A DNA stretch of 64,000 nucleotides from Botryllus schlosseri. Its lineage: Eukaryota. Of the stretch, positions 4,746 to 64,000 are shown piece by piece; position 1 is the stretch's first letter, and each line of letters starts with the position of its first letter. Below the pieces are notes generated by a model. That model was not told the origin of the DNA. It worked only from the letters and a program-made list of their open reading frames with translations, and ran no database searches. The stretch spans positions 4,898,001-4,962,000 of the forward strand of contig CM119376.1 in NCBI GenBank assembly GCA_051294905.1, in the 5' to 3' direction. Position numbers and translations under genes: made by a program.

Positions 4746-4929
4746 TAATACGGTAATTAAAAATATGGCAGATCGTAAAAATGCCATATATAGTGTACAG
4801 CTTATTTTCGGAAAATATAAGGCATTACTACAATTGCTTTTATACTTCAACATGTATATCCTTAAGACAAAAGAACTGAAACTATAATTAGAACTCAACG
4901 TATAATACTAGGAATTGAAATAAAAATAC

Positions 4930-5533: not shown

Positions 5534-6273
5534 GTGATATGTTCTTGGCGGGTTGGCCCTCCTATTATTTTCAAAGTGCACATCGCTACTTATAGTGGTC
5601 AGCAAAACCGGTGCAAGTCATGTCGTGTTCCACACAGTTAGGGGAGGCCTTTCCAGAATTATCGGCAGGTCGCATCACGTATTTGCGGACGCAGCGAATA
5701 TGGCACTTGCGGTATATCTCAAATGTGTCTCACCTCAAATTTCATTTCAGTGGCATTTCGTGTCACGACAAAATATAATGAGTGGTTATTATGACTACAA
5801 ACCTGGCCCCCGAGAACGATCATTGCGCAGAGCAATCTGTTTAGTTAAAATGTACGGCACGTCTTGTCTTGCTTTGAAATGAATGACATGACTCCTGCGT
5901 ATTATGAACGAGAAATATGATAATTGCCACTTAAAATATAGCTGACAAGAATGTATAGATATTCTGGTTCAATTGAACAATTTTAGGAATTAATGCAGGT
6001 TTAGCGACTTTTTCAGCGTTTTTTGTTTCAAGATTTAGCAACATGTAGCGATTTTCAATACCAGTTTTAGCGATTTTGGACGATCCGGAGTTGGCAACAC
6101 TGCTCATAAGAAATCTATTTCAGTCGCACGCATCAAGTCCACATATTCATCGCAAGATAGTAATCTACTGGGAAGATGCTACAGAGTCTTTCTGCGTCCT
6201 TTCGCTACATTTTCATACACTCAAGCACATGTAACATCCATACTTATACCGCGCAGATTCAGATAACGCAAAC

Positions 6274-10262: not shown

Positions 10263-11003
10263 ACAGTGGACATGCTCGACGACTGTCCGATAGCTGTCTT
10301 CGTCGACCCCTTTTGGACCGCCACGGACCCTCGCGGACCCTCGAAGTTTTAGTTCAACTATAGTGCAATCGTCATCTGTCTTGTGCAAATGATATCTGTA
10401 GGCTAGTGAAACAGCAACAAAATGACTTTTCTTGAAAATAACATCACACTATTTATCAGGGATATGTAGAACTGTCTAGTTCTAAATATCCCTGCTATTT
10501 ATGTAGAAATTGGGTTGACTTTTATTATTTGAAAGTGAACTTCGCAACTGCATTTCTTGAAATACGTGTTCATGTCTTGAAATTCCACGCCATCGACTTG
10601 ATAGAAAATCCATTTCCACAGAGATAGGTGTTGGCTAATGTAATAATAACGCGTAACGTTGCGACGACACATTTGGGTATGATCGCAACAAATATGGCAC
10701 TAAAATTGGCAAACATATTACGTCAAGCCTGGTCATTTCTATTGAGCAGCTCATCTTGAAGTTATTGCGGAAAATGGTTATGAATATCACAGAAAGAAAC
10801 AGATCTTTGTAAACATTTCGAAGTCACCGTGATTACTAATCCAACTTTTTATTCTTTCCACAACCCCCAAGTTCGGGAGTTTTACTATAGTAAGGAAGCG
10901 AAACCACCTCGTGATGATCCCAATTAAAAATAAATACGATTTAGGTTATCCGCTATTTTGTAAATTTAGAGGCTTCGCGGACCCCCGGTTGAGAACCACT
11001 GCC
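10263..11003 (-). mobile_element. hAT-type MITE (CAGTGGTTCTCAACC terminus family)
   Basis: Terminus ggttgagaaccactg near 11000; internal segments match 46877-47230 and 49200-49347 in reverse. The left terminus is degenerate. Confidence 0.65.
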
Positions 11004-11236
11004 CTAATTTAATCATTTAGTGCAAAATCCGGATCTTGCATCCTTCTACTAGATGACGCTGTGGCGTGATCGATACGTAAGGGGAATCACCGGATAGCTC
11101 TCTCCAGCTTATTTTCAGCGTGCAGCTGTCTTGGTTGTTTTACCATTATTTATTTCTAAATATTGTTTAGTACAGAAGGTGAGGTGGTCACGTCTTGCTC
11201 ATCTAATGAAGAGCATAGAAAATAAATAAATTCACA

Positions 11237-17200: not shown

Positions 17201-20200
17201 AGGCTGCGCACAAAAAATCCGAAGTGATGACTTTTTTTTAATCGTTGCGCACTCTTGTCCAAGGCACCGCGCAGGCGCTCTGACTCGAGAAAAATGAGAG
17301 GGAACATTGCCAGGGGTAAATACTGCTATCGCTGAAGTCTGAAACCGAGGTAGGCCTACAAGTGCGGATCGAAAAGGCAAATATTGCGCTCCGCGAAGCA
17401 ATGAGAATTTGCAATCGTGTGCGACTCATGAAAGAGATTTTTCTTTTACTATGGTATCGTACGCGTGAGCGATACTGATATCATATCAATAGCGCAATCC
17501 TTTGTGGGAATAGCAAAATAACGTGGTTTAACAAAATTATAAATAACAATGGGCTAGCTAGAAGTTAACTGCGAGAAACTAACGAATAGTCTTCTCCGCG
17601 TGTCATGAATATTGTGTAAGATTTACTGTACAATTACATGCCGCGAATTTTCGAAGTCATCACTTCCATCAGGCGAATCTGATCACGTATGGTGATATAG
17701 GATAATATGCAGAATGGCCTGTGCAAGTACAAGCACCAATATTGTTGAAAAAATCCATCCCTTTGCAAACGTTGATCGGGAAATGTAGCAACTATATGCA
17801 CTGTAGGGTGTTGCATTAGATCAGCTTCTCAGCACCACAAATTTGTGATTTCATTCTATTCGTTTGAACGGATATCTTCTGTCGGTAAGGTCACACGCTG
17901 ATCTTGTTCTTGCTTCAATCAGACTTGATTATTCGTATCAGTATATCTGACTGTATGTCTTGATAGTAATGAGTGCATTGCCGGTATTAAGACGTCACAT
18001 CAGTGTTTTAACGCGATAGGCCTACATCGATCGCATGTATTGATTTCAAGTGCGTTCTCGTGCGTGTATATGTCTGTCTTCTAGTAATCCATATTATGTT
18101 ACCATATCGTCGAAGTGGAATCAAAGTGACTAATGTCCAGATTTCAATATCTTTTGGCATAGCAGATAGGAGGTCACGAAATAGCGTGATGTAAGGAAGT
18201 CATTATACCAACGGGTACGCCCGAAGATGTTTGATTATATTTAGGGGTCCTACCTTTTCCAACACATCTCACTCGATCAGCTTTACCTGTTAATGTGATT
18301 ACGTGAGCAGAGACAGGATTAAAATTGATAGCAATATATGCAATTCCCGATGATATTGACCGATTTAATCATGAATTATGGACAATTTTCGCGCCTCGCA
18401 CGTTTTGGCGAAACGCCCACTAAACAAAGACCAGACATAGATGATTAGTAGCGGTGAAAAGCGTGTAGCCTGAGGGGGGTCTGGGGGGCGAAGCCCCCCA
18501 GAAGTTCGGTTTATCACCCTATGGGGGGCCTGGTTGCGCACTGTTGTCCAAGGGCCTGCGCAGTGAGTTGGCGTATTTGCGCAGACTCGTGAAGAATTAG
18601 AGGGAACATTGGTCATGACTCATACCTAGTTGTACTACAACTAAATTTTGTAAAATGCGCAACTAAAACTACTCGCTTCTCAACATCCGCAACTAGAAAT
18701 AGAACTGGAACTACTCGCTTTTTAAAGCCCAGAACTAGAACGAGTCAAAAAAAAGTAGTAGTGGTTTGTACAAGACTATTAAGTACATTCGGGTACTCGT
18801 AAAATTTCCATGCCGAGCCATAATTTCCATGTATGTATCAGTTGGCTACTTTGTTTTTGCCCGTAACAATGAACGTGCAACGTATTATATATTATTAATC
18901 ACAATGATCCAGGAAGATGCAGTTGTTTAATTCTGCTTGTTCATAGCCAAGAAAAATAATTTTACTCCTGGCAAATTCCCTATAAACGAGCCAACTTGTT
19001 GCTGCAGTAGTGCAAGTATTTAAAAGCCACTTGACTACTACTAGGGTTGTAATGAATCGAGTCTTGCCTAGACTCTAGTCACTTTATATATTGATTCGAT
19101 AGACTCTGTTCCTGTAATAGATTTAATAACGTTTCTTGGATGTAGGGTCTTCTACCTGTTTGAATAAACATGTTGAAAATGCAAAAAATATGTATATTAC
19201 GAATGTGAGCCGTTCGATATCACCCAAAAGTTCTAAAGTGAGTTGAACTAGAGACCGAACAGCGAACGCTATTATTTGGACTCGGACTGGACTCAAAACC
19301 ATAAAAGTGAAATTGACTTGTGACTCGGGAGTCGGAACCGAGTGACCTGATTATAACCCTGAGACGGGAGTGTCGTGAAAAAGAAGCACTTTGCACTGAC
19401 GAACTCTAGGCAGCAGTATCTGCAAACGCTTGTCATAACTTCATTTGAATGATTGTGGCAATGTGGGGAGAACGTCACAACGTTTGACCCTAGATTTATT
19501 GGATCGCGCTCGGAGAAAAGTTCACCCTCGACTGATCCCTTGAAGCTTGATTCTGAACCGCCGAAAGGCTGAGTTCTGCCATTGGCCAACATTTGATGGA
19601 TAATTCTGTTATTCAGCTTCTTGGAGGTACAGAACTTCAATATACAATTGAATAGTAAATTTATATTGAAATGAACCCAAATATTTTCGGCTGACACTCG
19701 TCAGGGGTAATCGTCAGCAACTAGTAGAGAATTCAAAAGAACAGCGATTGTTACGATTGTTGATATACGATGTTCTTTTGAATTCTCTACTACTTGCTGA
19801 CGATTACCCCTGACGAGTGTCAGCCGAAAACATTCGGGTTCATTTCAATATGAATATACTATACAATTCTTTTGGTACGAAACCTTACCGAGACGACGGA
19901 TCTCGCGTCACCTTGGAGTCGATTTTCATCAAAATACGCCAACTTGAAAAATTTCATGCCGGTGACGTCATATTTGCTGATACGATTGTCGATATACAAT
20001 TTTCTTTCCAATTGTCTACTTATCCGAATGTGACGATTACCCCTGACGAGTATTACCAAAAACATTCGGGTTCGTTTCGATATGATCTCAATAGTATATT
20101 GACGTTGTGTGCCTCCAAGAAGCTCGTCGTGATTTGTGAAATATTTCAGGAGCTGGAAAAAATGCTGTCCGATGCCGACAGCTCGCCCCGAGCGAAACTA

Positions 20201-26616: not shown

Positions 26617-29600
26617 TCACAGCATACTCAGTGGATCGTCCATTACTGCGGAAGGCTCCGATTTAGGTTCTTTAGCTGTGGTCGACTTCTTGCCAGATTT
26701 CGAAGGCGCCTTCTTTTTCTTCGACGAACTTGTGGCGAAGATGTCGTCCATGCCGTCGTCATCGTCAAAAATCGAAGCCCCCGCTTTTGGCTTTTTGTCG
26801 GCTTTCTTCGATTTCTTTTTACTCGGAGCTGCGCTCGCGAAAATATCATCGCCGAAAATATCGTCGTCAGCCTGCGGCTTAGTTTTCAATGGCTTTTTGG
26901 AATCCTTTGTCAAAGGCGCCTCGCCGAATATGTCAAGATCATCTGGAGACTTTGTAATCGACTTTGAGTTCGATTTTAAAGTGCTGCCTCCCCCCAAAAT
27001 ATCATCATCATCATCTTCCAGGAAATTGCTTTTGCTCGAAGACCGTTCCTTGTCGGTAGCCGGCACTGAAGTAACGTCATCTCCAAATAAATCATCGTCT
27101 GAAACAACGTTCGCAGCTGCTTTCTTTCTGTCATTTTTCTTCGGCACACTACCGATGGAGAGATCTCCGAAAATGTCATCATCCTCATCGATTGCGACTT
27201 TTGCCACTGTTTCAGTCTTTGTTTTTTTCTTCGAATCAAACCCAGACAGGAAATCATCATCGTCACCGAAAATATCATCGTCAAACAACTTTGGCGCTTT
27301 TGATTTGCTTTCATTCTTCGGTGTTTTAGCAAAAAGAGATGACCCAGAGAAGAGTTCGTCATCCAGATCTTCAGAATCGAGCAGACTTTTAGGCTTTTTG
27401 GTGAGTGACCCATCATCAAACAAATTGTCCACAAAGTCAGTATCTTTATTATTTGCAGACACCGGATCAGCTGGTTTTGACACATCCCCAGAATCAAACT
27501 TTGACGAGCCGTCTGCATCGGGAGTCTCATTCACGGGTGACGTTTCACCCACGGGACTTGGTTTAGAAGCAGGTCGGCCCTTCGAATGTCTCGTGGGCGG
27601 CCTCCGATTCCTCTGTCCCCTAGCCCTGGTCTTGTTGACGCTCTCCAGCGTGTTAACAGTGGGCGGTTTGTCGAAAGATATCTCAGTTTTCGTGACGGGT
27701 TTCGGCTTTGGCGCCGCGCCCGGTAACAGAGACGCGGGGTTTATCGATAATGCGTTACGGATATTACTGACAGACGAGCTCTGCGGAGATTTAACCCGAG
27801 GCTTGAACGGCTTCGCAGTCGTGTTCAGAGGCAGTTTCTGCAACGATTTGGGAGAATTTACAGACGCGACTTCCGGTGTTCTATCCGATTCTTCTTTCTT
27901 TTTTTTTTCCTCCGAAACATCACCTGATTTTTTGTCGCCCGAAGACTTCTGCGGCAGTTTAGGCAACAATTTCCGAGTATTCACAGGCGCCACATCTGAT
28001 TTTTTATCAGATTCCTCTTCATTCGCTGTTTTGTCCTCGGAAATATCGCTTAGTTTCTTGTCGGCCGATTTTTCCACGTCCGAAAAATCACTGTTGGAAG
28101 ACTTGGTGCTCGCGTCAGAAACGCCACGCCGTTTAAGTATAGCGGCGGACAGTTCTCCACCGGGGAAACCGCCCGCAAACATAGACACAGCCCCTGCCGG
28201 TTTTTTCCTAGCGGGAGGTGGGGTGTCCTGCTTTTCCTCTTGGTCTTCATCTGACGAGTCAAATAAATCATTGGATTTTTTCGCCTCTACCGATTTCGCA
28301 GACGTTGTCTTATCTTCATGATCAGATTCGTCAAAAAGAGCATCTGGTTTTGTGGTTACTTTTGCAGGAACACTTGCATCTTTCTTTGCGGATGTACCTG
28401 TACTTGAAAACAGATCATCTCCGCTGTCACTATCGAGAAAGCTCTTTGTTTTGGCGCTCGATTTCGGGGTCGACTTTACATCCGCGAAAAAATCATCGTC
28501 AGAGTCACTGTCGAAAAGGTCTTTCGCTTTTTTACCAGTGTCGGGTTGTTTTGATTTTGCGACTGGAGGCTTTCTTGAAAACATTCCCTCATCTGACGAT
28601 TCAGAGTCGAATATCGCTGGTTTCTTGGTCGAGCTTTTCTTTGGAGAATCTGTCTGTAGAGACTGTTTGGGGGTTGTTTTCTTCGCTGGCTTGCTGGGAG
28701 CGTCACCAAACAGCATACCATTATCATCATCACTAGAATCCCCGAATAAATCAGATACGGGTTTTCGTTCGGGCGTTTTTTTCTTGCCGGGAGGCAACTT
28801 GTCCTTTCCGAACTTCGATTTCTCTGCAGGTTTTTTAGAAAATTGATCATCCTCGTCGCTGTCAGCACTGAATAAACCAGAGACGGGTTTGCGTTCGGAC
28901 GTTTTTTTCTTCGCAGGCGGCGACTTGTCTTTCTTGGCCTCTAATTTCGGAGCCGGTTTCTCGGAAAATAGATCATCCTCGTCGCTGTCTGCAAATAGGT
29001 CGCCAGTCTTCTTAAACGGGGACTTTTCGGACACTTGAGAGTCGCTGTCAGAAGAGGTGCTGTCCTTTCTCGTCTTTTTGAGAAGTTCCTTGTTAAGAGC
29101 ACCGCCGAATAACGCGATTCCACCCATCGGTTTTGAAGACTTTTCCTCCTTGACTGGATGTTCGGTGGGTACGTTATCTTCCTCTTCGGAGGACAGTTTT
29201 TGACTCTCGTCGTCTCGACTGTCTACAGAATTTTGGGGAGAATCCTCATCGCTGACATCGGCGCCATCGAATAATCCCCCTTTTTTGGATTTCTTGTCAA
29301 ACAGGTTAGGCGCGTTGCCAAACAATCCTCCTGAATCTTCAAAAAGATCATTATCATCATCAGAATCGAAAAGATCTTCGTTTTTTGGCACGATTTTAGC
29401 CTTTTCCGCACGTTTCGATAGACTCTTTGATTTAGGTTTAGACGCGGCTTTATGCACAGGAAATTTTTCCTTTTCGTCCGAATCACTTTCGACAAATAAG
29501 TCCGCATCATCGCTAACTGAAGACGATGAAAACTTGGTCGCTGCCGGTTCATGATCTTCATCTTCCGAGAAATCAGAGTCGGAAACATCGGACACGTCAG

Positions 29601-30351
29601 ATTCAGATTCGGAAATAGAATCTTTGCGATACGACAATTTTTCAACGTCATCATCTGATTCACTGATACTGCCTTGATCATCTTGCGCCATTTCATCGTC
29701 ACTGGGCAAATCCCGAATTCCAACATCATCCGACTCCAGAAAACCTCTACTTCCGATCAAATGTGGAAGCGGTCTTGCAACGTAAGGATCTTTCGGTTCG
29801 TATATTACTTGCTCAGGGACGCCGTTACCCTGTTCTTCATCGGAATCGAGGTCCGAGTCTATATCCGAGTTGGCTGCGTCTGGATCTAGTATATCAAACG
29901 AGTCTTCCAACACTTTAAGGCCAATTTGAATAGCCGTTTTTAATTTTGGAAATGGATCTATATCACCTTCGGTACTTTCGTTTTCGTTTTTAACACCATC
30001 TGCACTGGCATCAGCTGAGATATCCTCGTCGTAGACGCGATTCTCGATAAACTGGGAATCGCTCAGGGTCATGAATTTTCCTGTTACATTCCGGACTTTC
30101 ACGTCGGCCATGTTAGTGTCGTGCATCAGGTCGTTGATCTGTTTGGTGGACTCCTGCGCCTTACGCATGAAGTCGATCGAAAACGCTTCGAGGTATTTCA
30201 GAAGGCCGGCGTCGGCGGCTAAATTCCATTTGGGCGCGTGCTCCCGAATTTCGCTCAATTCCCAGGGCCGCGTCCATGGTTTTTCATGTGCGGATGTAGA
30301 TGTTTTCACGCTGGAATCACCAGCAGTTGTCACTTCTCCGTCCTGCTGCAT
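26617..30351 (-). CDS. WASHC2: WASH complex subunit 2 (FAM21), single coding exon, ~1244 aa
   Basis: Uninterrupted 3.7-kb ORF; first ATG at 30351 (the ORF track starts at an upstream GTG). N-terminal WTRPWELSEIREHAPKWNLAADAGLLKYLEAFS and FMTLSDSQFIENRVYDED match the FAM21 head. About 20 LFa-type motifs (LFDSDDD, LFADSDEDD, DDIFGD), a capping-protein-interaction motif TLESVNKTRARGQRNRRPPTR (~27583-27650) and C-terminal DDPLSML. Confidence 0.93.
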   Translation of the reverse strand: MQQDGEVTTAGDSSVKTSTSAHEKPWTRPWELSEIREHAPKWNLAADAGLLKYLEAFSIDFMRKAQESTKQINDLMHDTNMADVKVRNVTGKFMTLSDSQFIENRVYDEDISADASADGVKNENESTEGDIDPFPKLKTAIQIGLKVLEDSFDILDPDAANSDIDSDLDSDEEQGNGVPEQVIYEPKDPYVARPLPHLIGSRGFLESDDVGIRDLPSDDEMAQDDQGSISESDDDVEKLSYRKDSISESESDVSDVSDSDFSEDEDHEPAATKFSSSSVSDDADLFVESDSDEKEKFPVHKAASKPKSKSLSKRAEKAKIVPKNEDLFDSDDDNDLFEDSGGLFGNAPNLFDKKSKKGGLFDGADVSDEDSPQNSVDSRDDESQKLSSEEEDNVPTEHPVKEEKSSKPMGGIALFGGALNKELLKKTRKDSTSSDSDSQVSEKSPFKKTGDLFADSDEDDLFSEKPAPKLEAKKDKSPPAKKKTSERKPVSGLFSADSDEDDQFSKKPAEKSKFGKDKLPPGKKKTPERKPVSDLFGDSSDDDNGMLFGDAPSKPAKKTTPKQSLQTDSPKKSSTKKPAIFDSESSDEGMFSRKPPVAKSKQPDTGKKAKDLFDSDSDDDFFADVKSTPKSSAKTKSFLDSDSGDDLFSSTGTSAKKDASVPAKVTTKPDALFDESDHEDKTTSAKSVEAKKSNDLFDSSDEDQEEKQDTPPPARKKPAGAVSMFAGGFPGGELSAAILKRRGVSDASTKSSNSDFSDVEKSADKKLSDISEDKTANEEESDKKSDVAPVNTRKLLPKLPQKSSGDKKSGDVSEEKKKKEESDRTPEVASVNSPKSLQKLPLNTTAKPFKPRVKSPQSSSVSNIRNALSINPASLLPGAAPKPKPVTKTEISFDKPPTVNTLESVNKTRARGQRNRRPPTRHSKGRPASKPSPVGETSPVNETPDADGSSKFDSGDVSKPADPVSANNKDTDFVDNLFDDGSLTKKPKSLLDSEDLDDELFSGSSLFAKTPKNESKSKAPKLFDDDIFGDDDDFLSGFDSKKKTKTETVAKVAIDEDDDIFGDLSIGSVPKKNDRKKAAANVVSDDDLFGDDVTSVPATDKERSSSKSNFLEDDDDDILGGGSTLKSNSKSITKSPDDLDIFGEAPLTKDSKKPLKTKPQADDDIFGDDIFASAAPSKKKSKKADKKPKAGASIFDDDDGMDDIFATSSSKKKKAPSKSGKKSTTAKEPKSEPSAVMDDPLSML

Positions 30352-30749
30352 GTCGAAGCTCACCTCAATGCATACGCAAAATCAAGTTACAACATAGAGG
30401 GTAAAGAGTACAACAACGATATGAAACAACACTGAAGTGGTCCTGGCGGAATTCTAGTGGAATCTTCGCTTTAACGTGAAACACCACGAATGATCATGTA
30501 AATCACTATTTCTGGGATTAACCCCGAGCGTATCGTGTAATCAGGAAATATCGACTACGGTTGAATTTTTTCTTTATTCGGGTCTAATTTGGAAAAAAAT
30601 CAGGATTTCGAGGCATAATTTAATGCAAAATCGTCATTAGCTCATTGCTATCTGAAATAAATCGAGGAATAATAGTCGACATGATTCGTAACATATTCTT
30701 CGCTATAGCGAAATTATTGAATGCAACCAGAAGCGTCGACTATAATATA

Positions 30750-50847: not shown

Positions 50848-51030
50848 ATCGCGCGAAGCGAAGGCGAATGAAGCGGACCAAAGTTCAATGAATCTACTCG
50901 AAAAAACGACTTACAAAATTATTTTGGCCACCTGCGAGCTCCGTATAAATTCGGGTGGGGGTGTCGTGTCGTTACCGACCTGGTAGCCCGTATAACTGTC
51001 GCGTACATTATGTCCCTCCGCTATTCCAAT
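50848..51030 (+). repeat. ~180-bp dispersed repeat shared with 55337-55520
   Basis: atcgcgcgaagcgaaggcgaatgaagcggaccaaagtt..gaatctactc..ttttggccacc occurs at both sites. Confidence 0.7.
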
Positions 51031-53010
51031 TCCTCAATTTTCTGGGAAAGGAGGACGATGGACATATTGGTAACCCTAACCACTAAGGTATCGCGCCACT
51101 CTTGATACTTGGAAATTAGGGCCAGAAACTGTAAAGACGGAGGAAAATTACGATATTATGAATACAAGCCATTCTATATCACTCGGGCAGAGTTGAAAAA
51201 GTGGGTTGAAACGGATTGAACTCAAACTGAACAGTGAACACAATGACATGGACTCTGACTCTAGTCACATCACTATGACTCGAACTCGACCCTCTACTCA
51301 TTGACTCGGACTCGGGCTTGACTCGATGGTGAATTGGAAATGACTCGACTTAACACGAGTCAAAATTATAAGAGAGATTAACTTGTGACTTGTGAATCGG
51401 TACCTTGTGACTCAGCCTGATATGTTGAAATTAAATTTTGATACCATCTTAGTCAACATAATCAGATTTACCGGTAAAACTGCTGGAGGTGGTGCCATTG
51501 AAAATATGGGCTCATGTGCGGCGGTCGAGACTATTGATGAGGTTTTTTCGCGTTTCCTGCGGTTTGTATTTACTTTATTGAAGCATTTAGTTATTTCGTT
51601 ACCTAAGCTAGAGATTGTCGCTCCTCAAAAATATTTGAAATGCCCACGCACCCACCAGACCAAATTAAAGAAAAAGCTCATATTCCTTACGTCGCACACT
51701 TTTTCCAATTCACAACTTTCACGGTGACAGCAGTAGTTCCCTCTACGGATCGCATTCGTCAAATCTGCCCCGGTCGGCCGAACCTATATCAGCCAACATG
51801 CTGCGGTCATTTTCGACGAACGTTTTTGCCAACACCGATCATTGAGACAGTACACTACGCGGGGTCGCATGTTGCCCAAACTTCACACGTCTTAGTGAGT
51901 CGTTGCATTCAATAGAATGGTACTAACTGTTGGTGTCTTATAGTCCCGCAACCGCATGCTATACATCCCTGGACTTAAGCGCCCTACCACCTCAAGTGAT
52001 CCTATAAAAATATACCAGTCTCTCCTAATTGAGAAAACAGGTTTAATCATTTCTGTAAATTATGCGTATTTTTAATTATTATTATTTTTGGATATCCATA
52101 TAAATAAGTCTAGTGACATTAGATCGTGCGAAGTGTGAGATAAATTTAAAAGCTGAATGGATACTACTCCAAAGTAGTTATGACTCCTTCCTATCTTGCA
52201 TCGTAGTCTTGCGATGTTTTGAAATGATAAAATTGTTAGTAAACTAAGACTGTTCCTGTCAAAAAATACTATTACTTTACTTTCATTACCGAAATATTTT
52301 GAACCCCTTCGAGCTGGGACGAAATAAGTAACCGAGTGTTCATTATTCAGAACAGTGTGGTTTATGGTGGCGAACCGATTTTCGATTTGAAAACGTCCCG
52401 CGACCCACCTACAAATTTGGTAACCTGATTTCGTTATTAAAAAAATGTCACCACCCCCATTCACGTCCGATTGTCGGATGCTAATTGATTAAAAAAGATC
52501 AGCACCTTCTTGACTCCAGGAAAAGGCTAAACGAAGCCATCGATGTCTAGATTCACGCATATTTTTCTGTATCAACGCTGCCTGACCTTGCTCTCTGTGG
52601 AGTTGTAATATCGCGCCACGAGAAGCCCATACTAGATGCCTTACTCGTTTTCGTTTGAATTCGTTTTCGTAGATGCTCGATTGCTCATGGGAAAGCTGAT
52701 AATTTAATCTAGTCTGACTTGAACTCAAATTAGTTCCCTATTATTGAGAGTCATTCCAGCGCGCATTCTAAACCTCAACTTTTCTCATGAATTCCAAGTA
52801 TGGCAGCAGTGAAGCGATTTCTAAAATATTTCGACCAGGTATGATTTATTGTTTTCGGCGACTTTTTCTCATGATGCGGATTTGAAACTAAGAGAAAAAG
52901 CAAAATTTTCCAATTCGTCTGGTCTTGTCGAGCTCTGTAATGCGAAGAGACACAGAACCCTTATTAGAACTCAGCTTCACCGAGAAACGTTCGTTTTCTT
53001 ACCTTGAAGA

Positions 53011-54139
53011 CTAGCATCTCGAACTGTATCGCAGTCTGTTGCTCTGTTGGAGGCTCGACCTTGTGGATTCTGTCAGGTAGAAATCGCCATGAGTTAAAAC
53101 GGTTGAGCATTTTGACACAAAAGAGACGACGAATCCAATTATTTTCCGAAAATAATGCTATACGTTGCCAATGTCATAGCGACCGTTGTGGGTACGAAAT
53201 TGAGCATCAAGGGGTACGAAGATCCTTGGGCCACAGAGCTACTTCTCATACAGATATCCCTGTACAGTTTTATGTTATGCTATAGAAATCTTTGCTTTAG
53301 AAAAAATAAACAAATATGTGTTGGTATTCAGTAAGAATCCTCCTTGTCTGATTATAACACGTTTACGCTGTTGTCAGTCAGGTGCTTGGCCAGCCAAAAA
53401 AAGAAAATGTGGCGTCGAATTATTAGAGTCAAGTTGCCTGCATGCACAAAGGCGTAAAATACCAGTTTAACGTTCAATTGAGCTATAAAAGCCATTTGAT
53501 TTAGCAAGATATATATATCTAAAAAAGTGAATCAGATTTTAGGGGTACACAAGATGCTCTGGCGACAAAGGAGTACGAGCAGCAAACACGGTTGGGAACC
53601 CCTAATGTATATAGGTAGCATTCGATGTTGCACGAGTCAAAAGCTGAAAAGCGATGTGTGCTGCAGTGAAAGTTATTGTGTCGCGCGAATATCGCGTTAC
53701 GGCCAAGGAAGTAAGTTTCCGACCCTAGATAATAGGGAATGGAATATGCACTTACTGGAGCAGTTCTTTCTATAGCTGTAAACCTTCTTTGGCTTTGCTG
53801 GCGTAACGCAAGGGGTTCTGCGAATATAGATCTGTTTGCTCACTGGCGCGATGTAGACACAGTCGTTCCTTTGGGCGGAAGCGCAGCTCACGACTGTTCT
53901 TGGAGGAGAACAGCGCGTAGCAGGAGCAGCTCGAGCAACGGCACAAGCTGACACCGCAGCTGGGGCGAAGGAGAATGTTCGAGCTGAAGAAAGCACGAAC
54001 AAAATGATCGTACATACAAAATTACTGACTTAGGCTACTTTGCTTATATCGATTTCTGAATAACATGCATCATACCCGGTAGGTAACAGTAGTAGGCCGA
54101 AGCCATACCGAGCATAGCGAGCATCAAGATGAAACGCAT
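53011..54139 (-). CDS. Predicted small secreted Cys-rich cationic protein, copy A (3 exons, 116 aa), unknown family
   Basis: Exons 54139-54076, 53983-53756, 53069-53011. Signal peptide MRFILMLAMLGMASA followed by YYCYLP. Donors GTATGA and GTAAGT; acceptors ttcttcag and ctgacag; phases 1,1. Exon 3 choice is the least certain part. Confidence 0.6.
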
Positions 54140-57011
54140 ATTTCTTCGTTGCTTAATATCCTGAAGGATGAATGTTCAACTGTAATGATCGACAGTGAAG
54201 TGATGAGATGTTACCAACCCAGTGCTTTTATGCATGGGCATAGTCGAGCAAGATAGAATCTCTCTGGTCGGAGTGTGTGTAGCTGCCACTTGAATGACTA
54301 TGAAAGAGAGAACGGTCTCTGCATTGAAGCGTAGTAAGAATCAACACTCCAATATGTAATTGAAAGATGAAAAAAGTCGACACAAAACCCACAACGGTAA
54401 TGTGCAACGCTTACTGACCATTTATTTAGAGACTAAACACGAATGACGCACGAGAGGTTAGATAGTGAGAGCTGAAATCATTCGACATCTCGGAAGCGCA
54501 TCTACTGGGAGATTCCGGTGTTTGTGTACTATATTCCGGCTCTGTATCAACATCGGAATCTTTTCACGATATAATTTCAGCGTTCAAGTGATTCAGCGTG
54601 TGCTCAAAGTACTGGAGTAGATATGGAGGATGAGATGTTGACGGAAATAGCTGCAACGAAGTGCAATGGCTTCCCGTCATTCACATCACCGATTCCCTGG
54701 AAATTATGTCTGGGATGACAAAAGTATAGGTTGTTTGTTAGATATGCAAAGATTAGCTTGCATCATTCACAGAACACGACGAAAACCGTTGTCATTACAT
54801 CCCTTTTTGTGTCAACATCGCGAATTCATTGGTATGATGGCAACCCACGCATTGTATTTTATACTATATGAACTTAGCGAAGTGCCGTGAAACTTTTATG
54901 CCAAATTACTTTCTCTCCAAATGTTCCGAGTTCAGCGTGCAGTTGAGTCTTTGGCGTCAGTTTCCATGCGCTACAACTAGAGCTGCATTTGAAACAAGGC
55001 CCTCGTTTTAAACATGTCTTTTAATGTTCTTTTTTCAACTTTTGAAATACCTCCTGTTTCAAATACAACCCTAGTCGCAAAATCTCTCTCTGTGTGATCA
55101 TCATCTTCCAATCTTCCCATTCATCTAATTTTTTTTCAGGATTCTATGATTCTTCAAAATCAAGTCTTCAATCAGTTGCTCCGTAGCCTCCATTTGTCTT
55201 CCTCTTATAGCCGTCAATCATCCTTGTTGCTTTGTGTGTCCTTTCATTTCCTTATATCCTGCCGACAACGCCATACAATGTAAGCAAAGGTGGTCACGGT
55301 CTGTAACGACTTACTTCTACTTTTTCGAAGTACTCATCGCGCGAAGCGAAGGCGAATGAAGCGGACCAAAGTTGAATGAATCTACTCCAAAAAATGATTT
55401 ACAAAGTAATTTTGGCCACCGGCTAGCTCCTTATAAATTCGGGTGGGGTTGTTGACCTTGTTGTGCCGTTACGGACCTGGTAGCACGTATAACTGTCGCG
55501 TACATTATGGCCGTCCGCTAATCCACGCACACTGCAAAACACAGTTATCTGGTCCGCGCATTTGCGATTTCAGTTTGCGATGTCAGAACATTAAATCCAA
55601 TGATTCATGTGCCTTTTACATTTTGTGCAGTGATTTCCAAAGGAAGTTGATAGATATAATGAATTGCAATTATGGTTATTTATATGTTACAATAATACAA
55701 CCTGACGAAGCACCTTAAATCTACATCAAATTCACTTCTGTCCGTGTTTAATGCACATCTCTTTGGACGACACACGACATAAATATGACCCTGCTGGAAT
55801 ACTTTCATCAACCTTTCAGTTAGGCTACTATATAATCATAATTATTTTATTTGCCGTAAGCCGTGGGTTGTTATAATAGGCGTAGCCGGGTGAGAAAAAA
55901 TGTCGTTTCCCCTTCGCATTGTCGACTTTTCGACTACATTGTGACCCCACGCGTGTCACTATTTCTCGTCAGAGTCGGTTGAAAAGCTTGGCGTATTAGG
56001 CTATGTACAATTCAATGTTATGAATATATGTTTTGAGAGTATAACATAACAGATATTACTGAATTCTCCCTAAATCTCCCATTTTCCCAATATATAGATC
56101 TGTGGCGCACCTCGAAATGCTTCTTGTGACCCACTGGTGGAAAACCCCTGATCTGATCAGCTCTTCGCACCGTATGCATATGTCAACTTTCAGGCTCCGA
56201 CGCTTCACGAAGCGTCCATATGAATAATGTTCAAAAGTACTGACTTATAGTTGAGTTGATTCAAAGACAGCAAATTGTATTTCTACTTGAAGTAGTTTTG
56301 GGCTGCTCCGAAAAGCACTGCTTTTACGTTTACTTGTGTATAATTATGTGTCGCCACTTCTACTTGAGAAGCTTTCTTTACTATTTTGACGATTTCTGCT
56401 TATCATTTTATTGATACAAATATAAGAGAAGGTCCATGCGTGGAGGGTCACTTAAAATTAATGACCACCATCGATTACTCGACGCAATCCAACACAAATT
56501 AGTAATTGCAATCAAGTAATCAAAATGTCGCGATCACGATACACATCAGTTTTCAAGGATATTTGACGCATGAGATCCTCGGCATTGCGCGAACTTCATT
56601 ATTTAGAACAATGCGTTGGGGTTCGAATGAGATGTCTACATATCAAAGACTTCGTAATGGGGTTTCGCAAAATGATGTAATGACAATGAACTGTCAATGA
56701 TGCTAGCTCCTCTTTGCATATCTCGCAAACAACCTGCTGCTATTATTCAAACATAATTTACAGAGAATCAGGGATGGGAATGACGGGAAGTGATCGCATT
56801 TCGTTAAAACTATTTCAGTCAACAATAAGTCATCCTCCATATCTACTCTAGTACTTTGAGCGTACGCTCAATCACTTAAGCGCTGAAATTATCCCACGCA
56901 AAGATTCCGGTGTTGATTCAGCACCGGAATATGCAACGCAAACACCGGTATCTCGCAAGTGATGCGCTTCCGAGATATCGGCTGATTTCAGCTCTCATTC
57001 CAGCCTCGCGT

Positions 57012-57950
57012 TAGTGTGGAGCGGATCGACAAATTCTCGGGTCCGGCTCCGATCCGGTTTGCCAATTCTCGGGTCCGGCTCCGATCCGGCTCCGGCTGTA
57101 TCAAGAAAAAGTACTGATTCGGCTCCGGCCAAAAATGAAAAAGTCCTGCCGGAAATCCGGCTCAATACGGTACGGTGGTTTCGTGAATTTAAAAATATGG
57201 CTCGTTTCTTTTCGAACTGGCTTGGCGGTTACTTGCGTGTTGTTGGTTGGCAGTTATTTAGTTTATAATTGAACGGTATATTCATATTGAAATGAACCCG
57301 AATAATTTCGGCTGACACTCGTCAGGGGTAATTGTCAGCAACTAGTAGAGAATTAGAAAGAACATTGTATATCAACAATCGTATCACAAAATATGACGTC
57401 ACCAGCATGAAATTTCGTGAATGAGAGAGCGTTCAATCTCGAAATTTCATGCTGGTGACGTCATATTTTGTGATACGATTGCTTGAAGAGCTTCTTGGAG
57501 GTACAGAACTTCAATATACAATTAAATAGTATATTCATATTGAAATGAACCCGAATATTTTCGGCTGACACTCGTCAGGGGTAATCGTCAGCAACTAGTG
57601 GAGAATTGGAAAGAACATTGTATATCAACAATCCTATCACCAGATATCATTCGATTGTTGATATACAATGTTCTTTCCAATTCTCTACTAGTTGCTGACG
57701 ATTACCCCTGACGAGTGTCAGCCGAAAATATTCGGGTTCATTTCAATATGAATATACTATTTAATTGTATATTGAAGTTCTGTACCCCCAAGAAGCTCTT
57801 CAAATAGTTATTTAGTTACAAACGTCATGCTTATCCATAAAGATTCTCGCCTTATCAAAAAAGTGCTGATCCGACTCCGATCCGGTCCGGCCAAAATTGA
57901 AAAAAATCCGGCCGGATATCAAATCTGGCTCCGGTCCATGCACCGCACTA
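57012..57950. mobile_element. hAT MITE with (GGCTCCGATCC)n subterminal repeats
   Basis: Termini tagtgtgg / ccgcacta; TSD cctcgcgt / cctctcgt (7/8). Contains nested palindromic MITEs. Confidence 0.8.
57483..57803. mobile_element. Near-perfect palindromic MITE (~150-bp arms)
   Basis: ttgaagagcttcttgg ... ccaagaagctcttcaa. An adjacent truncated copy (57280-57481) has a perfect 42-bp hairpin (57376-57417 / 57440-57481). Confidence 0.88.
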
Positions 57951-57968
57951 CCTCTCGTGTGTCATTAG

Positions 57969-58759
57969 TAGGGCGGTTTTTTTTGACATGTCATTATTTG
58001 TCAAAATTTTGTCAAAATTGTAGAGTTAGGTCAAAATTTGTCAAAATTTTTCATAAAGTCAAAATTTTTTGACGTCTGTATTTCGTTTGTATCGTAGATT
58101 TTGTACTGCCGGTGAACTTATTATTTGATATTTTACAGTTTGTAGCCTATTTTATAGGCCTACCGTTGTAAACAGCTAATTGTCTGCTCATTGTGAATCA
58201 TAAATGGTCAAATAAAATAAATAGGTAGACATGGTGTTATGGTCAACGTACCGCAATATCCTAACTAAAGACTTCTTGGGCATTGCATCATTCTTATGTT
58301 AAGAAGCGCTTGATGAAAAATTGTGATGTTGACAACATTGTCAGAATGAAGCAACACGGTGTCGGACTGTTGAACGTCCTTGGCAAGTTTCTTAGTAAGG
58401 ACATGCATTTTCTACCAGAGAATGTAGGAAAGTAGCCTATCTCTTGTTGCACTACAAAAAATCCTAATTATTTCTTCGTAATACATATTGCAACCACTGG
58501 AATTCTTCATAGGGCCAGATTCCGTTAAAATATTGGGTTTTTTATGTAAAAAGTTGGCTGTTTCTGAGCCAAAAACATTTTTTCCGGCCAAACTACTTCG
58601 TTAGGACAGCCAGTTCAAACCAGAAATGAAAATAAGTGGTACAATTTTGTGAGAAATGTGGGAAAATACCTAATTTGCATACGTTAGGTCAAAATTTGGT
58701 CAAAATTTTGTTTTTTAGGTCAAAATTTTCCTTTTTTTAGGTAAAAAAGAAACGCCCTA
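57969..58759. mobile_element. hAT deletion derivative (TAGGGCG termini)
   Basis: tagggcggtttttttt / aaaaaagaaacgcccta with a perfect 8-bp TSD GTCATTAG (57961-57968, 58760-58767). Collinear with 3925-4745. Confidence 0.9.
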
Positions 58760-58981
58760 GTCATTAGTAATCAGTGTCTAAGGAAACTGTGAGTACGTGT
58801 TTCGCATTGCCATTGTGGGCTTTGTGTAGACTTTTTATCTTTCCATTACATATTGGAGTGTTGATTATTACGGCAGTTCAATGACGAGACCGTTCTCTCT
58901 CTCTCTTTCATAGTCATTCAAGTGGCAGTTACACACACTCCTCCGACCAGAGAGATTCTATCTTGCTCGACTATGCCCATG

Positions 58982-59020
58982 CATAAAAGCACAGGGTTGG
59001 TAACATCTCAACACTTCACT
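58982..59020 (+). promoter_or_regulatory. Candidate core promoter (TATA-like CATAAAAG plus Inr-like TCACT) of the secreted-protein gene
   Basis: CATAAAAG at 58982, 93 nt upstream of ATG 59075, with CTTCACTG about 30 nt downstream. The CATAAAAG is conserved in the inverted copy near 54225-54232. Confidence 0.4.
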
Positions 59021-59074
59021 GTCGATCATTACAGTTGAACATTCATCCTTCAGGATATCAAGCAACGAAGAAAT

Positions 59075-60207
59075 ATGCGTTTCATCTTGATGCTCGCTAT
59101 GCTCGGTATGGCTTCGGCCTACTACTGTTACCTACCGGGTATGATGCATGTTATTCAGAAATCGATATAAGTAAAGTAGCCTAAGTCAGTAATTTTGTAT
59201 GTACGATCATTTTGCTTGTGCTTTCTTCAGCTCGAACATTTTCCTTCGCCCCAGCTGCGGTGTCAGCTTGTGCCGTTGCTCGAGCTGCTCCTGCTACGCG
59301 CTGTTCTCCTCCAAGAACAGTCGTGAGCTGCGCTTCCGCCCAAAGGAACGACTGTGTCTACATCGCGCCAGTGAGCAAACAGATCTATATCCGGAGATCC
59401 CCTTGCGTTACGCCAGCAAAGCCAAAGAAGGTTTACAGCTATAGAAAGAACTGCTCCAGTAAGTGCATATTCCATTCCCTATCATCTAGGGTCGGAAACT
59501 TACCTCCTTGGCCGTAACGCGATATTCGCGCGACACAATAACTTTCACTGCAACACACATCGCTTTTCAGCTTTTGAGTCGTGCAACACCGAATGCTACC
59601 TATATCAGGTGTTCCCAACCGTGTTTGCTGCTCGTGCACCTTTGTGGCTTCAGATCATTATGCGTACCTAAAAAAATGTGATGAAATATTTTAGATATAT
59701 ATTGCTAAAGTAAATGGCTTTAAAGCTCAATTGAACTGTTATTTTAGGCCATTGTCCATGTACTCTAATAAATTGATGTTAGCTTGGAAAATGTGAAAAA
59801 TAAAATTCAAAAGCCTTTCTTTTTATCGGCTGGCTACGCACTTGGCTAACAACAAGTGTAAGCGTGTTATAATCATACAAGGAGGATTCTTACTAAATAG
59901 CAACACTTATATGTTGATCCTTTTTCGAAGCAAAGATTGTAATGGCATAATATGTAACTGTGCTGGAATATCTGTCTGAAAAGCTGCTCTGTGGCCCAAG
60001 GATCTTCGTACCCCTTGATGCTCAATCTCGTACCCTCTACGGTCGTTATGACATTGGCAACGTAGCGTTCGGAAAATAATTGGATTCGTCGTTTCTTTTG
60101 TGTCAAAATGCTCAACCCTTTTAACTCATGGCGATTTCTACCTGACAGAATCCACAAGGTCGAGCCTCCAACAGAGCAACAGACTGCGATACAGTTCGAG
60201 ATGCTAG
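59075..60207 (+). CDS. Predicted small secreted Cys-rich cationic protein, copy B (3 exons, 116 aa), unknown family
   Basis: Exons 59075-59138, 59231-59458, 60149-60207. Protein MRFILMLAMLGMASA-YYCYLPARTFSFAPAAVSACAVARAAPATRCSPPRTVVSCASAQRNDCVYIAPVSKQIYIRRSPCVTPAKPKKVYSYRKNCSKSTRSSLQQSNRLRYSSRC. Versus copy A, exon 2 shows 3 synonymous and 1 replacement difference; the single exon-3 difference falls immediately after the TAG. Confidence 0.62.
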
Positions 60208-61584
60208 ACTTCAAGGTAAGAAAACGAGCGTTTCTTGATGAAGCCAAGTTCTAATGTGAGTTCTGCGTTTCTTCGCATTACAGAGCTCGACAAGACCAGA
60301 TGAATCGGAAAATTTTGTTCATTCTCCTGATTGCAAATCCGCATCATGAGAAAAAATCGTCGAAAACAATAAATCATACCTGGTCAAAATATCTCATGAG
60401 TGCATTTGCTGCAGCCATACCTGGAATTCATGAAAAAGTTGAAGTTCAGAATGCGTCCAGGACAGGGATATCTAGACTGTGACGGGATTGATAACTAGTC
60501 AATTGACCGCGTACTCAGTTGACGGTATAAGGGCATTGCTTACAACAGCAGTTGAGGCGGAAGAGTGTCGTTGCGCTAGATCTAGTCTAGATATCGCTGG
60601 TCCAGGAATATGGACACTCAGTACTATTATACAGTCTACACGGAACTAATTTGAGTTAAAGTCACACTCGATTCCATCCTGTAGGCATACGACTCATCTT
60701 CTTACACGTAAGTCAATACGAAAACGAATTCAAATGATTAAGGCGTAGCATACACTTTCTACGGCACGATAGTATTAAATCGCAGAGCCAGGCCGCGCTG
60801 TCAGAGGAAAGTATGTTGGAATCCAGTCACTCGTGGATTTTTAAGCTTGGCCTCGTTTAGCTTTTCTATGGAACTCGCCAAGTATATGTCTTAGGTCCAC
60901 TGTTATGTTCCTGATCTTGTTAGAACAAAAACTCAATACGACGAGGTTGCAATATGAAATCAGCATAATATCATAAGAACAACTTAAGACGGGTGACACG
61001 ATCCATAGTGCAGGTAAACGAAAGGCAATAGACAACAGAACACAGGGTGTAAATACGAAGCACGACACACGAAGAAATAATGATTGTCGGTAATTACTAA
61101 TTCTAGTGACAAATAAGAGACAAACGATACCAACGTAAAATGTACGAACATAACAGCTTTTATATGGCACTCGCCAATTTTATGTATCAGTTCCACTGCG
61201 GTCGTTGCCTCGAGTATTTCAATGACTTCTTTAAGTCGGAATCAAAAGCGCACAAGTACAACACACGCGCGTCCACGTCGTCCAAATATATTTTATGATC
61301 GACCGAAAAGATCATCGCTTTATTAAATATGCCGGACCTGATTTGTGGAACAGCATCCGGCCGGCCATTCGACAGTCGACGAGCATGTCCACATTCAAGT
61401 CAAAATACAAGCAATTAGTAGTAAATAAATACTAGTCCATCCTCAAGATTACTGGACCACACGACTGACCTATCGATCTCGCTTTCCATGACATGCCTCC
61501 CCATTTCTTTTCGCTTTATTTTTTCTATACTATTTTCTCTATTTTTCATTCAGTGTGCATGCCTCCTCTTTACATCGCCTAGAG

Positions 61585-64000
61585 CAGTGGTTCTTAACCT
61601 TGCCTCCAGCGCCCCCCAAGGGGCGTTGGCGATTTTGAAGGGAGAGGAAACGCTCAGGGGGCGATATGGGGGGCGCTGGGCTCAGGGGGGGCGGTAAGGG
61701 GGGCGCTGGAGAAAAATATCTTCGCAGTAGATGATGTCAGTGTTGGGATCAAGTCACTACCATCGAGTCACGAGTCATTTCGAGTCATTGCACATTTTGA
61801 CTCGAGTCAAGTCAAGTCAATAGATTTTCAAAGGTGACTCGAGTCAAGTCAAGTCACTCGATCTTTGGAGGTGACTCGAGTCAAGTCGAGTCAAGTCAAG
61901 TCAAGTCACGAGTCAAGTTGTCTTTTCGAAGTATGAGGCATGATTACGTCGTTGCAATTTGCAAGATGTCTGCAATACAGATTGAGTGGTCATTGATTCC
62001 GAACCGATGAACGAATATAGAGTTAAATACGCGCGCAAGAAGACGCTGCATCGCTCACATATACGTAAAACTATTAAACTACGTAAGTAATTGCATAACC
62101 TCAGTTTATAGTTACCAGCCAAAATAGAGAAGAGACAAACGAATTGATAAGATGCAATACATTACCCATTTACGAATAGATATGATACAATTCGAGTATG
62201 CGTTGAGGACAATATATAAACTATATTCGAATTCAATTCAAATAAAACAAGAGGTTTGGTACAGGTAAAAGAACAGAGAACAGAAATAGACATTTTGCTA
62301 TTTTATTACTACTAGAGTGAACGACAACGTAAGCTGTAAGCTTCGATCACTTCGTTTGCGGTCAATTTATTTATGAGAGAACAATCGCGGCTCGGTGAAA
62401 CGCTCGATCATTGAATGATTGATCGCTTTCAAGGGTTACACCAGCGTTTCGCGAACAATCCGAACATATGCAAGATACAGTGATTTTTATCGACACCGAT
62501 TACTTGATGACTTGAAATTGACCCGTGAATTTTGCTTCGAGTCACGAGTCAATCCACATTTCTGATACGTCGAGTCAAGTCAAGTGAAGTCATTTTAGCA
62601 AAGTGACTCGACTCAAGTCAAGTCTTACGAAATAGTGACTCGAGTCTGACTCGAGTCAAGTCATGAATCGAGTCATCCCAACACTGGATGATGTGGTGGT
62701 AGGACATATCCCTAATGAGTATTCAGAGTAAATTAACACCGAAAACTTCGTTATATATAGCCTACAAAATACATTTAGGTTTAATTGTCCATGGGCGCCT
62801 AAATGAGTGGCACCGAATGTTCCTGTCTTGGCAATCTGAACCCCAGAAGACGAATTCCATCTGGCAGGGGAAAATTATATGCAAGTGAAGAAATACCACT
62901 CTGAAATCGTGTGCGTCTTTTAGTTTAGTACGATTGGGCGACAGGGTTATCTAAAACTAGATATTCCTGTTGGGCGATATCCCTGTTGAGCGATTCTATA
63001 TTTTTTGATATAGCAGACAGGAGGTCACGAAATAACATCATGCAACGAAGTCATACCAGCGGGTTCGCCCGCCCGAATATGTTTAATTATCAGTTACGGG
63101 CCCTACAGCCCTACAAGACACCTCACAATGTTCGCTCTAAGTTTTGATGAGTCTGCGCACAGTCTGCGCTGACCCTTGGACAACAGTGCGTAATAGCTAA
63201 AATAAGGTCATAACTTCGGATTTGTTGTGCGCAACGTAGATTTTCTGTGCGCAGAGACCGTGCACTACGCACGTGCGTAGCTTAGAGGGAACATTGCACC
63301 TCACTCAGCTCTACTGGTAAATCTGGTAACGTGAGCAGAGAGGACAAGAAATTGACAGCAATATATATGCAATTCCCGATCTTACTGACCGATTATATTA
63401 TGAATTATCGAAAGTTTTCGCGCTTCGCACTGGCTCGCTAAACAGTACAGCTGATTCCTGACAAAAGCGAACGACGTGATGGGAGGCGGTCGGTTTATCA
63501 CCCTATGGGATCCCAAGACCCAAGTTTTTTTCGGGGGGCCTGACGAAGTGCCGTTTCGTTCCTGCCAACGGGTATACGCCCGAAGATGAATAATTATTAT
63601 TGAGGGGTCCTACCTTTTCAATCACACATCACTCAGCTTTACCGGTAAATCTGTTTACCCGAGCAGAGATAGGATGAAAATTGATCTCAACATACATGCA
63701 ATTCCCGATTATATTGACCAATTCAATTATTAATTAGTGAAATTTTTCTCGCTTCGCGCGTCTAGGCGAGAATAGCTGCCTCGGTAAACGGACACCCAAT
63801 GTAGATGACTATAGTTTCAGCAAAGAACGAATAGCCGAAAGGGGGTATGGGGGCGAAGCCCCCCGGAAGTTTGGTTTATCACCCGATGGGGGCCCAAGAC
63901 CAACGCTTTTTTGGGGGGGGCTGACGAAGTGCTGTTACGGCCCTGGTAACGAATTAATTGTACCTAAGGGCACGCCCAAATATGTTTAATTATTAATTAC
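61585..64000. mobile_element. hAT element with tandem satellite-like cargo, running off the window
   Basis: Left TIR cagtggttcttaacc preceded by gcctagag. The module start ggg..cgccc(g/a)aa.atg recurs at 63061, 63571 and 63970. Confidence 0.75.
61738..62686. mobile_element. hAT MITE with GACTCGAGTC repeats, nested insertion
   Basis: TIR cagtgttgggat / atcccaacactg with a perfect 8-bp TSD GATGATGT (61730-61737, 62687-62694). The uninterrupted empty site is visible at ~47505-47520. Confidence 0.92.

Follow-up and report, generated by a model that had tools for sequence, protein, structure and literature searches.

The vitelline-membrane proteins of Drosophila (VM26A, VM32E, VM34C type) are secreted proteins of about 115-170 amino acids (aa) that are rich in Ala, Pro, Ser and Tyr and have a few conserved Cys. 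Their genes are clustered and give the huge output of one cell type, and the products are linked by disulfides first and by tyrosine cross-links later. Silkmoth chorion genes stand in arrays of divergent pairs, in which members of two different families share about 300 bp of promoter, and their copies evolve in concert through gene conversion. Mussel foot protein 6 (Mfp-6), a basic, thiol-rich byssal plaque protein of about 11 kDa, contains about 20% Tyr and about 14% Gly. In ascidians, whose tunics contain cellulose and highly sulfated glycans, the metal-binding vanabins have 18 Cys in a conserved pattern, and ferreascidin is a strongly basic protein of about 10 kDa with Tyr and 3,4-dihydroxyphenylalanine (DOPA) making up about half of its residues. 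Ferreascidin, a DOPA protein of stolidobranch blood cells, is cited in PMC3039461. Also, the blood (morula) cells of stolidobranch ascidians secrete tunic matrix and a phenol oxidase that is proposed to sclerotise the tunic (PMC9395347), and DOPA proteins are present in tunic holdfasts (PMC13079984); phenol-oxidase/DOPA chemistry comparable to that of the mussel byssus exists in the ascidian tunic (PMC9395347; PMC13079984). Here we describe a divergent pair of genes in a 64,000-nt stretch of the Botryllus schlosseri genome (C6:4898001-4962000, hereafter the window, to whose numbering all plain positions refer), which code for a small, basic, Cys-containing, predicted secreted protein and form part of a gene family with at least 43 members.

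A four-exon gene in each arm and its transcripts

Each arm of an inverted duplication in the window holds a TATA-driven, polyadenylated four-exon gene, and we regard the gene and its expression as near certain. For the RNA evidence, four runs of the same species were mapped on 58700-61700, of which X23 is raw-read bulk RNA-seq (about 6% sampled) while the other three (X1, X2 and X8, from three studies) consist of contigs. Of the 12.9 million sampled X23 reads, 244,718 (1.9%) fall on this stretch, and the depth is 10,000-18,000 per orientation in the exons as against about 1-5 in the introns, which are thus more than 1,000-fold lower. The junctions 59138|59231 and 59458|60149, originally proposed from the sequence, are both exact to the base in the reads, with GT..AG on the + strand, and the same exon joints occur in the contigs of the three other runs. 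In 15,569 reads the template-switch oligo stands directly before 59013. This places a capped start 30 nt downstream of the TATA-like box CATAAAAG and fixes the strand, which is the predicted one since the introns read GT..AG on it and the cap-site oligo lies at its 5′ end. The transcript ends where the depth stops near 60416, after the AATAAA at 60368. The structure expected at the outset therefore stands as regards its coding exons, two introns, strand and TATA box (58983-58990, 93 nt before the ATG), and so do the 116-aa product, encoded by a spliced coding sequence of 351 nt in both arms, and the identity of exon 1, which is 100% between the arms and likewise across all seven genomic copies of the local cluster described below. 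Missing from it were a third intron, in the 3′ untranslated region (UTR), and the non-coding exon 4. The parts of the two genes are as follows.

58983-58990, + strand: right-copy TATA-like box; the mapped start follows 30 nt later
59013-59138, + strand: right-copy exon 1, with a 62-nt 5′ UTR, ATG at 59075 and then the codons for the predicted signal peptide and the beginning of the mature chain; phase 1
59139-59230, + strand: right-copy intron 1, 92 nt, GT..AG; junction crossed by about 17,350 X23 reads and by X2 and X8 contigs
59231-59458, + strand: right-copy exon 2, 75 whole codons that make up the mature core, from read depth and translation
59459-60148, + strand: right-copy intron 2, 690 nt, GT..AG; junction crossed by about 22,450 X23 reads and by X1 and X2 contigs
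60149-60215, + strand: right-copy exon 3, coding for a basic C-terminus with Arg-Cys as its last residues; TAG stop codon at 60205-60207
60216-60283, + strand: right-copy intron 3, 68 nt, GT..AG, in the 3′ UTR; about 10,750 reads across 60215|60284 in X23, one contig in X1
60284-60416, + strand: right-copy exon 4, 3′ UTR with AATAAA at 60368-60373; depth zero past about 60416
about 54224-54231, - strand: TATA-like box of the left copy
54076-54201, - strand: left-copy exon 1, coding at 54076-54139; start at about 54201 placed by symmetry
53756-53983, - strand: left-copy exon 2, 4 nt different from the right copy, 1 amino acid changed (Ser to Thr)
53003-53069, - strand: left-copy exon 3, stop at 53011-53013
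52805-52934, - strand: left-copy exon 4, 3′ UTR with AATAAA on the minus strand at 52850-52845; end approximate

The 5′ UTRs of the two copies differ at 1 of 62 positions, and the two starts (about 54201 and 59013) lie about 4.8 kb apart, each gene having its own TATA box. Three other ways of reading the same stretch were considered and rejected. If exon 2 were read on into intron 2 as far as the stop at 59517, a listed open reading frame of 101 aa would result; this is not the main product, as the intron depth of about 1-5 compares with more than 10,000 in the exons. The opposite-strand reading frames over exon 3 (53004-53285 on + and 59873-60247 on -) disagree with the GT..AG introns on the gene strand and with the position of the cap-site oligo, and the junction reads do not allow exon 3 to be assigned to another gene.

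To apportion the transcripts, letters private to each copy were compared with the X23 read fractions; since the sequenced animal may differ from the reference letters, the resulting shares are to be read with that limit. By this measure the right window copy has about 28% of the reads and the left window copy 27-28%, followed by the copies L005 and L006 together (about 27%), L002 and L003 together (about 17%) and L007 (at most 3%). The private exon-2 letters of the left copy (59391T, 59394C and 59398A in right-copy coordinates) are found in 27-28% of the reads, and the left-type letters at 60301 and 60306 in exon 4 in 22-27%. These values indicate that both window copies are transcribed, at similar levels. 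The right copy thus appears about as active as the left one despite a 1.76-kb insertion that stands 254 nt upstream of its start and has no evident effect on promoter output, which argues for a very strong and compact promoter; such a promoter could serve as a transgene driver. Between runs, the k-mer depth of exon 2 lies anywhere from about 6 in X8 to about 2 x 10^5 in X2. It is a poor gauge of level, and the range suggests strongly sample-specific expression. Other members of the family appear to be transcribed too, since X2 contigs that start in the shared signal exon run on into sequence like that of the paralogue L008. Separately, at 61000-61700 the X1 and X2 contigs reach a word depth of 200-6,000 with many fixed differences from the window sequence, and X23 has only about 5-50 reads there; this signal probably comes from a transcribed repeat or a paralogue elsewhere.

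Duplication, arrays and conservation of the copies

The inverted duplication, which had been proposed from the sequence, was recovered both by a repeat finder and by BLAST. The repeat finder gives arms of 665 nt (53609-54273 against 58941-59605, 98% identical) plus flanking arm pieces. For the full extent, one arm was compared as reverse complement with the other by BLAST, whereby left-arm 54447-52762 aligns to right-arm 58760-60455 at 87% and left-arm 54772-54466 to right-arm 56691-56997 at 80%. The resulting layout is given below.

52762-54772: left arm of the inverted duplication, from BLAST and the repeat finder
54773-56690: unique spacer between the arms, without an arm-to-arm BLAST match
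56691-60455: right arm of the inverted duplication, containing the 1.76-kb insertion that is not in the left arm
56998-58759: insertions resembling miniature inverted-repeat transposable elements (MITE-like) or foldback elements, upstream of the right-copy promoter; the left arm has only 18 nt at the equivalent place

The insertions at 56998-58759 are nested, as seen from BLAST, the inverted repeats I3, I6 and I11, and the sequence. One of them is a MITE-like element of about 790 nt (about 57972-58759) that is flanked by the repeated word GTCATTAGTA, is rich in GTCAAAATTT words and has ends of the GGGCGG...CCGCCC type, and foldback elements with 151-nt arms, 99% complementary, lie at 57257-57803. 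A direct repeat of about 180 nt with 90-91% identity is also found at 50848-51028 and 55336-55525, the latter copy being inside the spacer between the genes.

The two genes had been called near-identical. This holds for the exons and not for the arms at large, as the middle of an intron reaches only about 74%, and the identity between the window copies changes along the gene in the following way.

5′ UTR: 98%
exon 1: 100%
intron 1: 97%
exon 2: 98%
intron 2: 95% in the first 150 nt, 74.5% in the middle, 97.5% in the last 80 nt
exon 3: 98.5%
intron 3: 85%
exon 4 (3′ UTR): 83%

In exon 2 we find the same 3 synonymous and 1 replacement differences that were counted originally. The mid-intron divergence predicts about 20 synonymous differences, of which only 1-3 are seen. 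With the mid-intron at about 74% and the coding exons at 98-100%, the duplication must be old and the near-identity maintained rather than recent. Most simply, the coding blocks and their edges are probably kept alike by gene conversion combined with selection. The locus is a clear case of concerted evolution.

The pair is also not alone. It is one unit among seven intact copies at C6:4.95-5.04 Mb within a family of at least 43, so that the proposed doubling of dosage by duplication is an understatement. The seven C6 copies lie within 90 kb, three on the + strand and four on the - strand, and all have their frame and splice sites intact. The unit bearing the pair (window 51034-59579) is present again at C6:4963664-4972000 with 93-97% identity, and more pieces of it are found at C6 4.982 and 5.03 Mb. 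The family was counted by a six-frame search of the genome (495.5 Mb) with the core exon and then with a family profile, which gave at least 43 core exons.

C6:4.95-5.04 Mb: seven core exons
C6:6.03 Mb: one core exon
C12: 12 core exons, 11 of them in an array of about 9.3-kb period (9.29 kb) at 25218845-25316391 and one apart at 25.457 Mb
C31: at least 23 core exons in an array of 6.14-kb period that fills much of the 199-kb contig (e.g. L041:6616-7392)

The C31 and C12 genes have a TATA box, a 5′ UTR ending in the shared word AAGCAACGAAGA, a phase-1 signal-peptide exon 1 and the same three coding exons, in which the core has 73 residues and the short last exon closes with Thr-Arg-Cys and the stop. 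Their products are basic, predicted secreted proteins of 115-117 aa with 12 Cys. In the alignment the blocks conserved between the window protein and the C31/C12 proteins are ACA-x-AR, VVSCA, C-x-YI, (I/V)RRP-C and PK-x-x-SYR. When the C31 type is compared with the C12 type, the exons are 90-95% identical and the introns 64-75%, and the ratio of replacement to synonymous differences per site (pN/pS) is 0.38, which points to purifying selection on the protein. Replacement changes among the copies are clustered at residue 78 (Ser/Thr/Ala/Pro) and residue 85 (Lys/Gln), and for copy L007 against the others pN/pS is about 0.75.

A further branch consists of three repeat-type genes at C6:6.08-6.16 Mb (L009 at 6076589-6077249, L010 at 6103068-6103718 and a third at 6155241-6155891), which share the promoter, 5′ UTR and exon 1 at 72-82% DNA identity. 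Like the window gene they have three coding exons in phase 1 and an aromatic N-terminus, but in place of its 75-residue non-repetitive core they carry the repeat cores (GYGCSYGS)n and (EPCAPAPVV)n, followed by an Arg-rich last exon that ends Arg-Cys. Judged from this DNA identity, the shared promoter and exon 1 show common descent. The only outside relative found for a repeat-type paralogue is P0005 (64% identity), in the Logan assembly of SRR25569784. Also, at L008/L018 (C6:6025216-6032100) the shared exon 1 and a window-like start of exon 2 are followed by a divergence or break, with a matching core fragment and TGA 6.5 kb downstream; this may be a split or decayed member. Taken as a family, the unusual points are the scale of expression, the three separate arrays, a shared 5′ module on quite different cores, and the lack of an entry among public proteins.

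Elsewhere in the window, on the - strand at 26617-30363, there is an open exon of 1,248 codons whose product is acidic, rich in Ser, Asp and Lys, and has many short motifs of Leu-Phe or Ile-Phe with acidic residues. It may resemble the FAM21 subunit of the WASH complex.

The product and its candidate roles

The predicted signal-peptide-like N-terminus consists of Met-Arg, a 10-residue hydrophobic core and Ala-Ser-Ala, and the mature chain of 101 aa has the composition originally given (8 Cys, 12 Arg, 6 Lys, 1 Asp and no Glu). Its isoelectric point (pI) is 10.2, its net charge +17 and its mass 11.2 kDa; 8 residues are Tyr (7.9%) and Cys likewise makes up 7.9%, with much Ser, Ala, Pro and Arg, and the chain is devoid of Gly, Glu, His, Met and Trp. 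The 8 Cys are evenly spaced, 8-20 residues apart, with one at residue 3 and one at the last residue. Cys occurs near both ends in every branch of the family and is always the final residue. There is no acidic pro-piece. Directly after the predicted signal cleavage site the main branches of the family have an aromatic YY or YS, and the L008-type copy has SCFY. AlphaFold with a five-row family alignment gave a local confidence (pLDDT) of 40, no secondary structure and no confident fold, a result that is compatible with disorder and, given so shallow an alignment, no proof of it.

A word-indexed search of 5.8 billion protein clusters with the core exon and the five-member family alignment gave no match. 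The window protein itself had none there either, which means that this collection lacks it. An HMMER search of 1.84 billion representatives gave four matches, all of them compositional only and without aligned Cys; the best of these (P0001, a repeat protein of 2,368 aa) matches at a repeated Ala/Pro/Ser-rich junction and was set aside. No outside relative of the window-type core was thus found in these two protein searches. Pfam gave no family at E up to 1, and ESM Atlas features gave no usable match for the core; an Atlas look-alike of the repeat paralogue ('keratin high-sulfur') had a score of 0.75, below the useful range, and was rejected. No account of the family was found in the literature on ascidian tunic, Cys or Tyr proteins, orphan genes or egg coats, or by exact peptide strings. 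The family is therefore new as far as these searches go and apparently restricted to tunicates, while seeming to be of a familiar general kind.

The original prediction had spoken of a defence or matrix protein. Its gene model, predicted signal peptide and composition stand, and in the lack of a homologue, domain or confident fold the function stays a matter of interpretation. We tentatively favour a bulk extracellular, cross-linkable matrix protein, which we consider plausible and somewhat short of probable. A bulk extracellular product is suggested by the copy number and the expression level, which are typical of proteins made in bulk. A structural role is suggested by the even spacing of the Cys with Cys near both termini, the charge of +17 without an acidic pro-piece, the richness in Ser, Ala, Pro, Arg and Tyr and the absence of a predicted fold, and further by the repeat cores of the sister genes, whose composition is typical of cross-linked structural proteins, and by a tandem amplification like that of histone genes. 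The product would then act as a cationic matrix or 'linker' protein, for the most part unstructured, in the tunic or in another secreted coat, e.g. the egg envelope, the tunic being more likely than an egg coat. The polycationic chain would bind polyanionic matrix components by charge and would then be locked into a network by intermolecular disulfides, to which the position of Cys at the chain ends would be well suited; cross-links based on Tyr or DOPA, made by the phenol oxidases of the animal, may add to these. In the same genome, at C9:15.03 Mb (15025585-15029521), matches to cellulose synthase and to GH6 stand on one strand, the former 3.3 kb upstream of the latter, and a second GH6 match is seen 43 kb away at C9:15068570-15068854. 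The C9 locus is the tunicate-type cellulose synthase, possibly in two copies, and gives an independent check of the phylum. To our knowledge, the cellulose synthase-GH6 fusion is peculiar to tunicates among animals.

Several points weigh against a matrix protein. With only 7.9% Tyr and no Gly the chain departs from most sclerotised or adhesive proteins that are known, and AlphaFold on five aligned rows cannot prove disorder. The promoter and exon 1 shared with the repeat-type paralogues suggest co-expression, yet they prove only descent. Also, the predicted signal peptide, charge, even Cys number, arrays and high expression would fit antimicrobial effectors equally well. In that case the product would be a host-defence effector, i.e. 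a cationic, disulfide-containing antimicrobial protein of blood cells or epithelia that is released into the tunic or blood, with the many copies giving dose and variety. Such a role is possible and we think it unlikely. The predicted signal peptide followed by a cationic chain (net charge +17, 8 Cys), the multi-copy tandem arrays with their very high expression, the clustering of replacement changes at residues 78 and 85 and the higher pN/pS of L007 (about 0.75) speak for it, and ascidian morula cells are known to make antimicrobial peptides such as botryllin (PMC9966394). On the other hand, 101 residues are large for the class, no compact Cys motif, Pfam defensin, WAP or other domain, or confident fold is present, there is no acidic pro-piece of the sort by which cationic peptides of this class are often masked, and the sister genes are of a repeat type that looks structural.

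A more doubtful option is a chemical role as cargo of blood-cell granules, in which the chain would be a polycation packing polyanions or metals, a thiol-rich redox buffer, or the ribosomal precursor or substrate of peptides and proteins containing DOPA or trihydroxyphenylalanine (TOPA), which are known from stolidobranch blood cells. The mass of 11.2 kDa and pI of 10.2 recall the basic DOPA protein ferreascidin, the YY or YS after the predicted cleavage site in the main branches would suit such peptides, and each chain has eight thiols; but the Tyr content is far below the composition of ferreascidin, the Cys pattern is unlike that of vanabins with no vanabin match in Pfam, and neither short peptide units flanked by dibasic sites nor acidic spacers are present. 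Slightly less probable again, and put forward as speculation, is that this family and its Tyr/Gly/Cys-repeat paralogues provide the gene-encoded protein substrate of stolidobranch DOPA/TOPA chemistry, either as the main protein partner that is cross-linked by phenol oxidases and tunichrome-type quinones to harden the cellulose tunic, or as a ribosomal source of aromatic N-terminal peptides. If so, the family would have been missed so far because its genes are short, spliced, unannotated and without homologues. That the unit is no host protein-coding gene at all, and is instead a transposable element, a non-coding RNA or an assembly artefact, is very improbable and in effect refuted. The unit does occur repeatedly, next to MITE-like elements, and no protein collection that was searched has a homologue. 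However, its copies are confined to local arrays and not dispersed, the transcript has a capped start and a poly(A) signal, is spliced at three canonical introns and is covered about 10^4-fold, the open frame and splice sites are kept in seven of seven copies, and the exons are far better conserved than the introns, with pN/pS of 0.38. Local arrays, intact frames and abundant spliced mRNA are thus found where a high-copy non-coding element had been named as the case that would speak against the gene.

A gene type that accounts for about 2% of the reads of a library is absent from a set of 5.8 billion protein clusters and has no detectable relatives. Expression or single-cell studies that use such annotations would miss one of the most abundant messages of the animal, which is probably a defining product of one cell type. 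If the product is a component of the tunic or another coat, it would be a concrete candidate for the protein binding of a cellulose-based animal matrix, and a simple 11-kDa polycation with terminal thiols would offer a model for biomaterials.

Comparison with known systems

Invertebrate cationic Cys antimicrobials (big defensins, crustins and mytilins, and the ascidian styelins and botryllin) resemble the window product in the predicted signal peptide, charge, even number of Cys, arrays and high expression. Unlike these, it has no recognised Cys scaffold or domain, its chain is longer and a pro-piece is missing. The vanabins differ in that the window protein has 8 Cys and no Pfam match to them, and ferreascidin is alike in size and basic pI and unlike in Tyr content. 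With Mfp-6 the window product shares its size, its basic pI and the many Cys capable of being free thiols in addition to Tyr, while its 7.9% Tyr, 0% Gly and lack of homology set the two apart.

The egg-coat proteins of insects offer a further comparison. As in the silkmoth chorion, there are arrays of divergent pairs, small and predicted secreted Cys-bearing proteins, a signal peptide on a short exon 1, and concerted evolution. The chorion pairs, however, join two different families at a shared promoter, whereas in the window the same gene stands twice with separate TATA boxes about 4.8 kb apart; a chorion domain is not found in Pfam, nor a homologue in the 1.84 billion representatives, and the window protein lacks Gly. 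Compared with the vitelline-membrane proteins there is no sequence similarity and no match to the VM domain in Pfam, and the window protein is far more basic and comes from a tunicate. Yet it is likewise small, predicted to be secreted, rich in Ala, Pro, Ser and Tyr and Cys-bearing, and its genes are clustered. By analogy, therefore, the window family, while a member of none of these groups, seems closest in manner to small, clustered, mass-produced and cross-linked coat proteins such as those of the vitelline membrane and chorion, and to Mfp-6.

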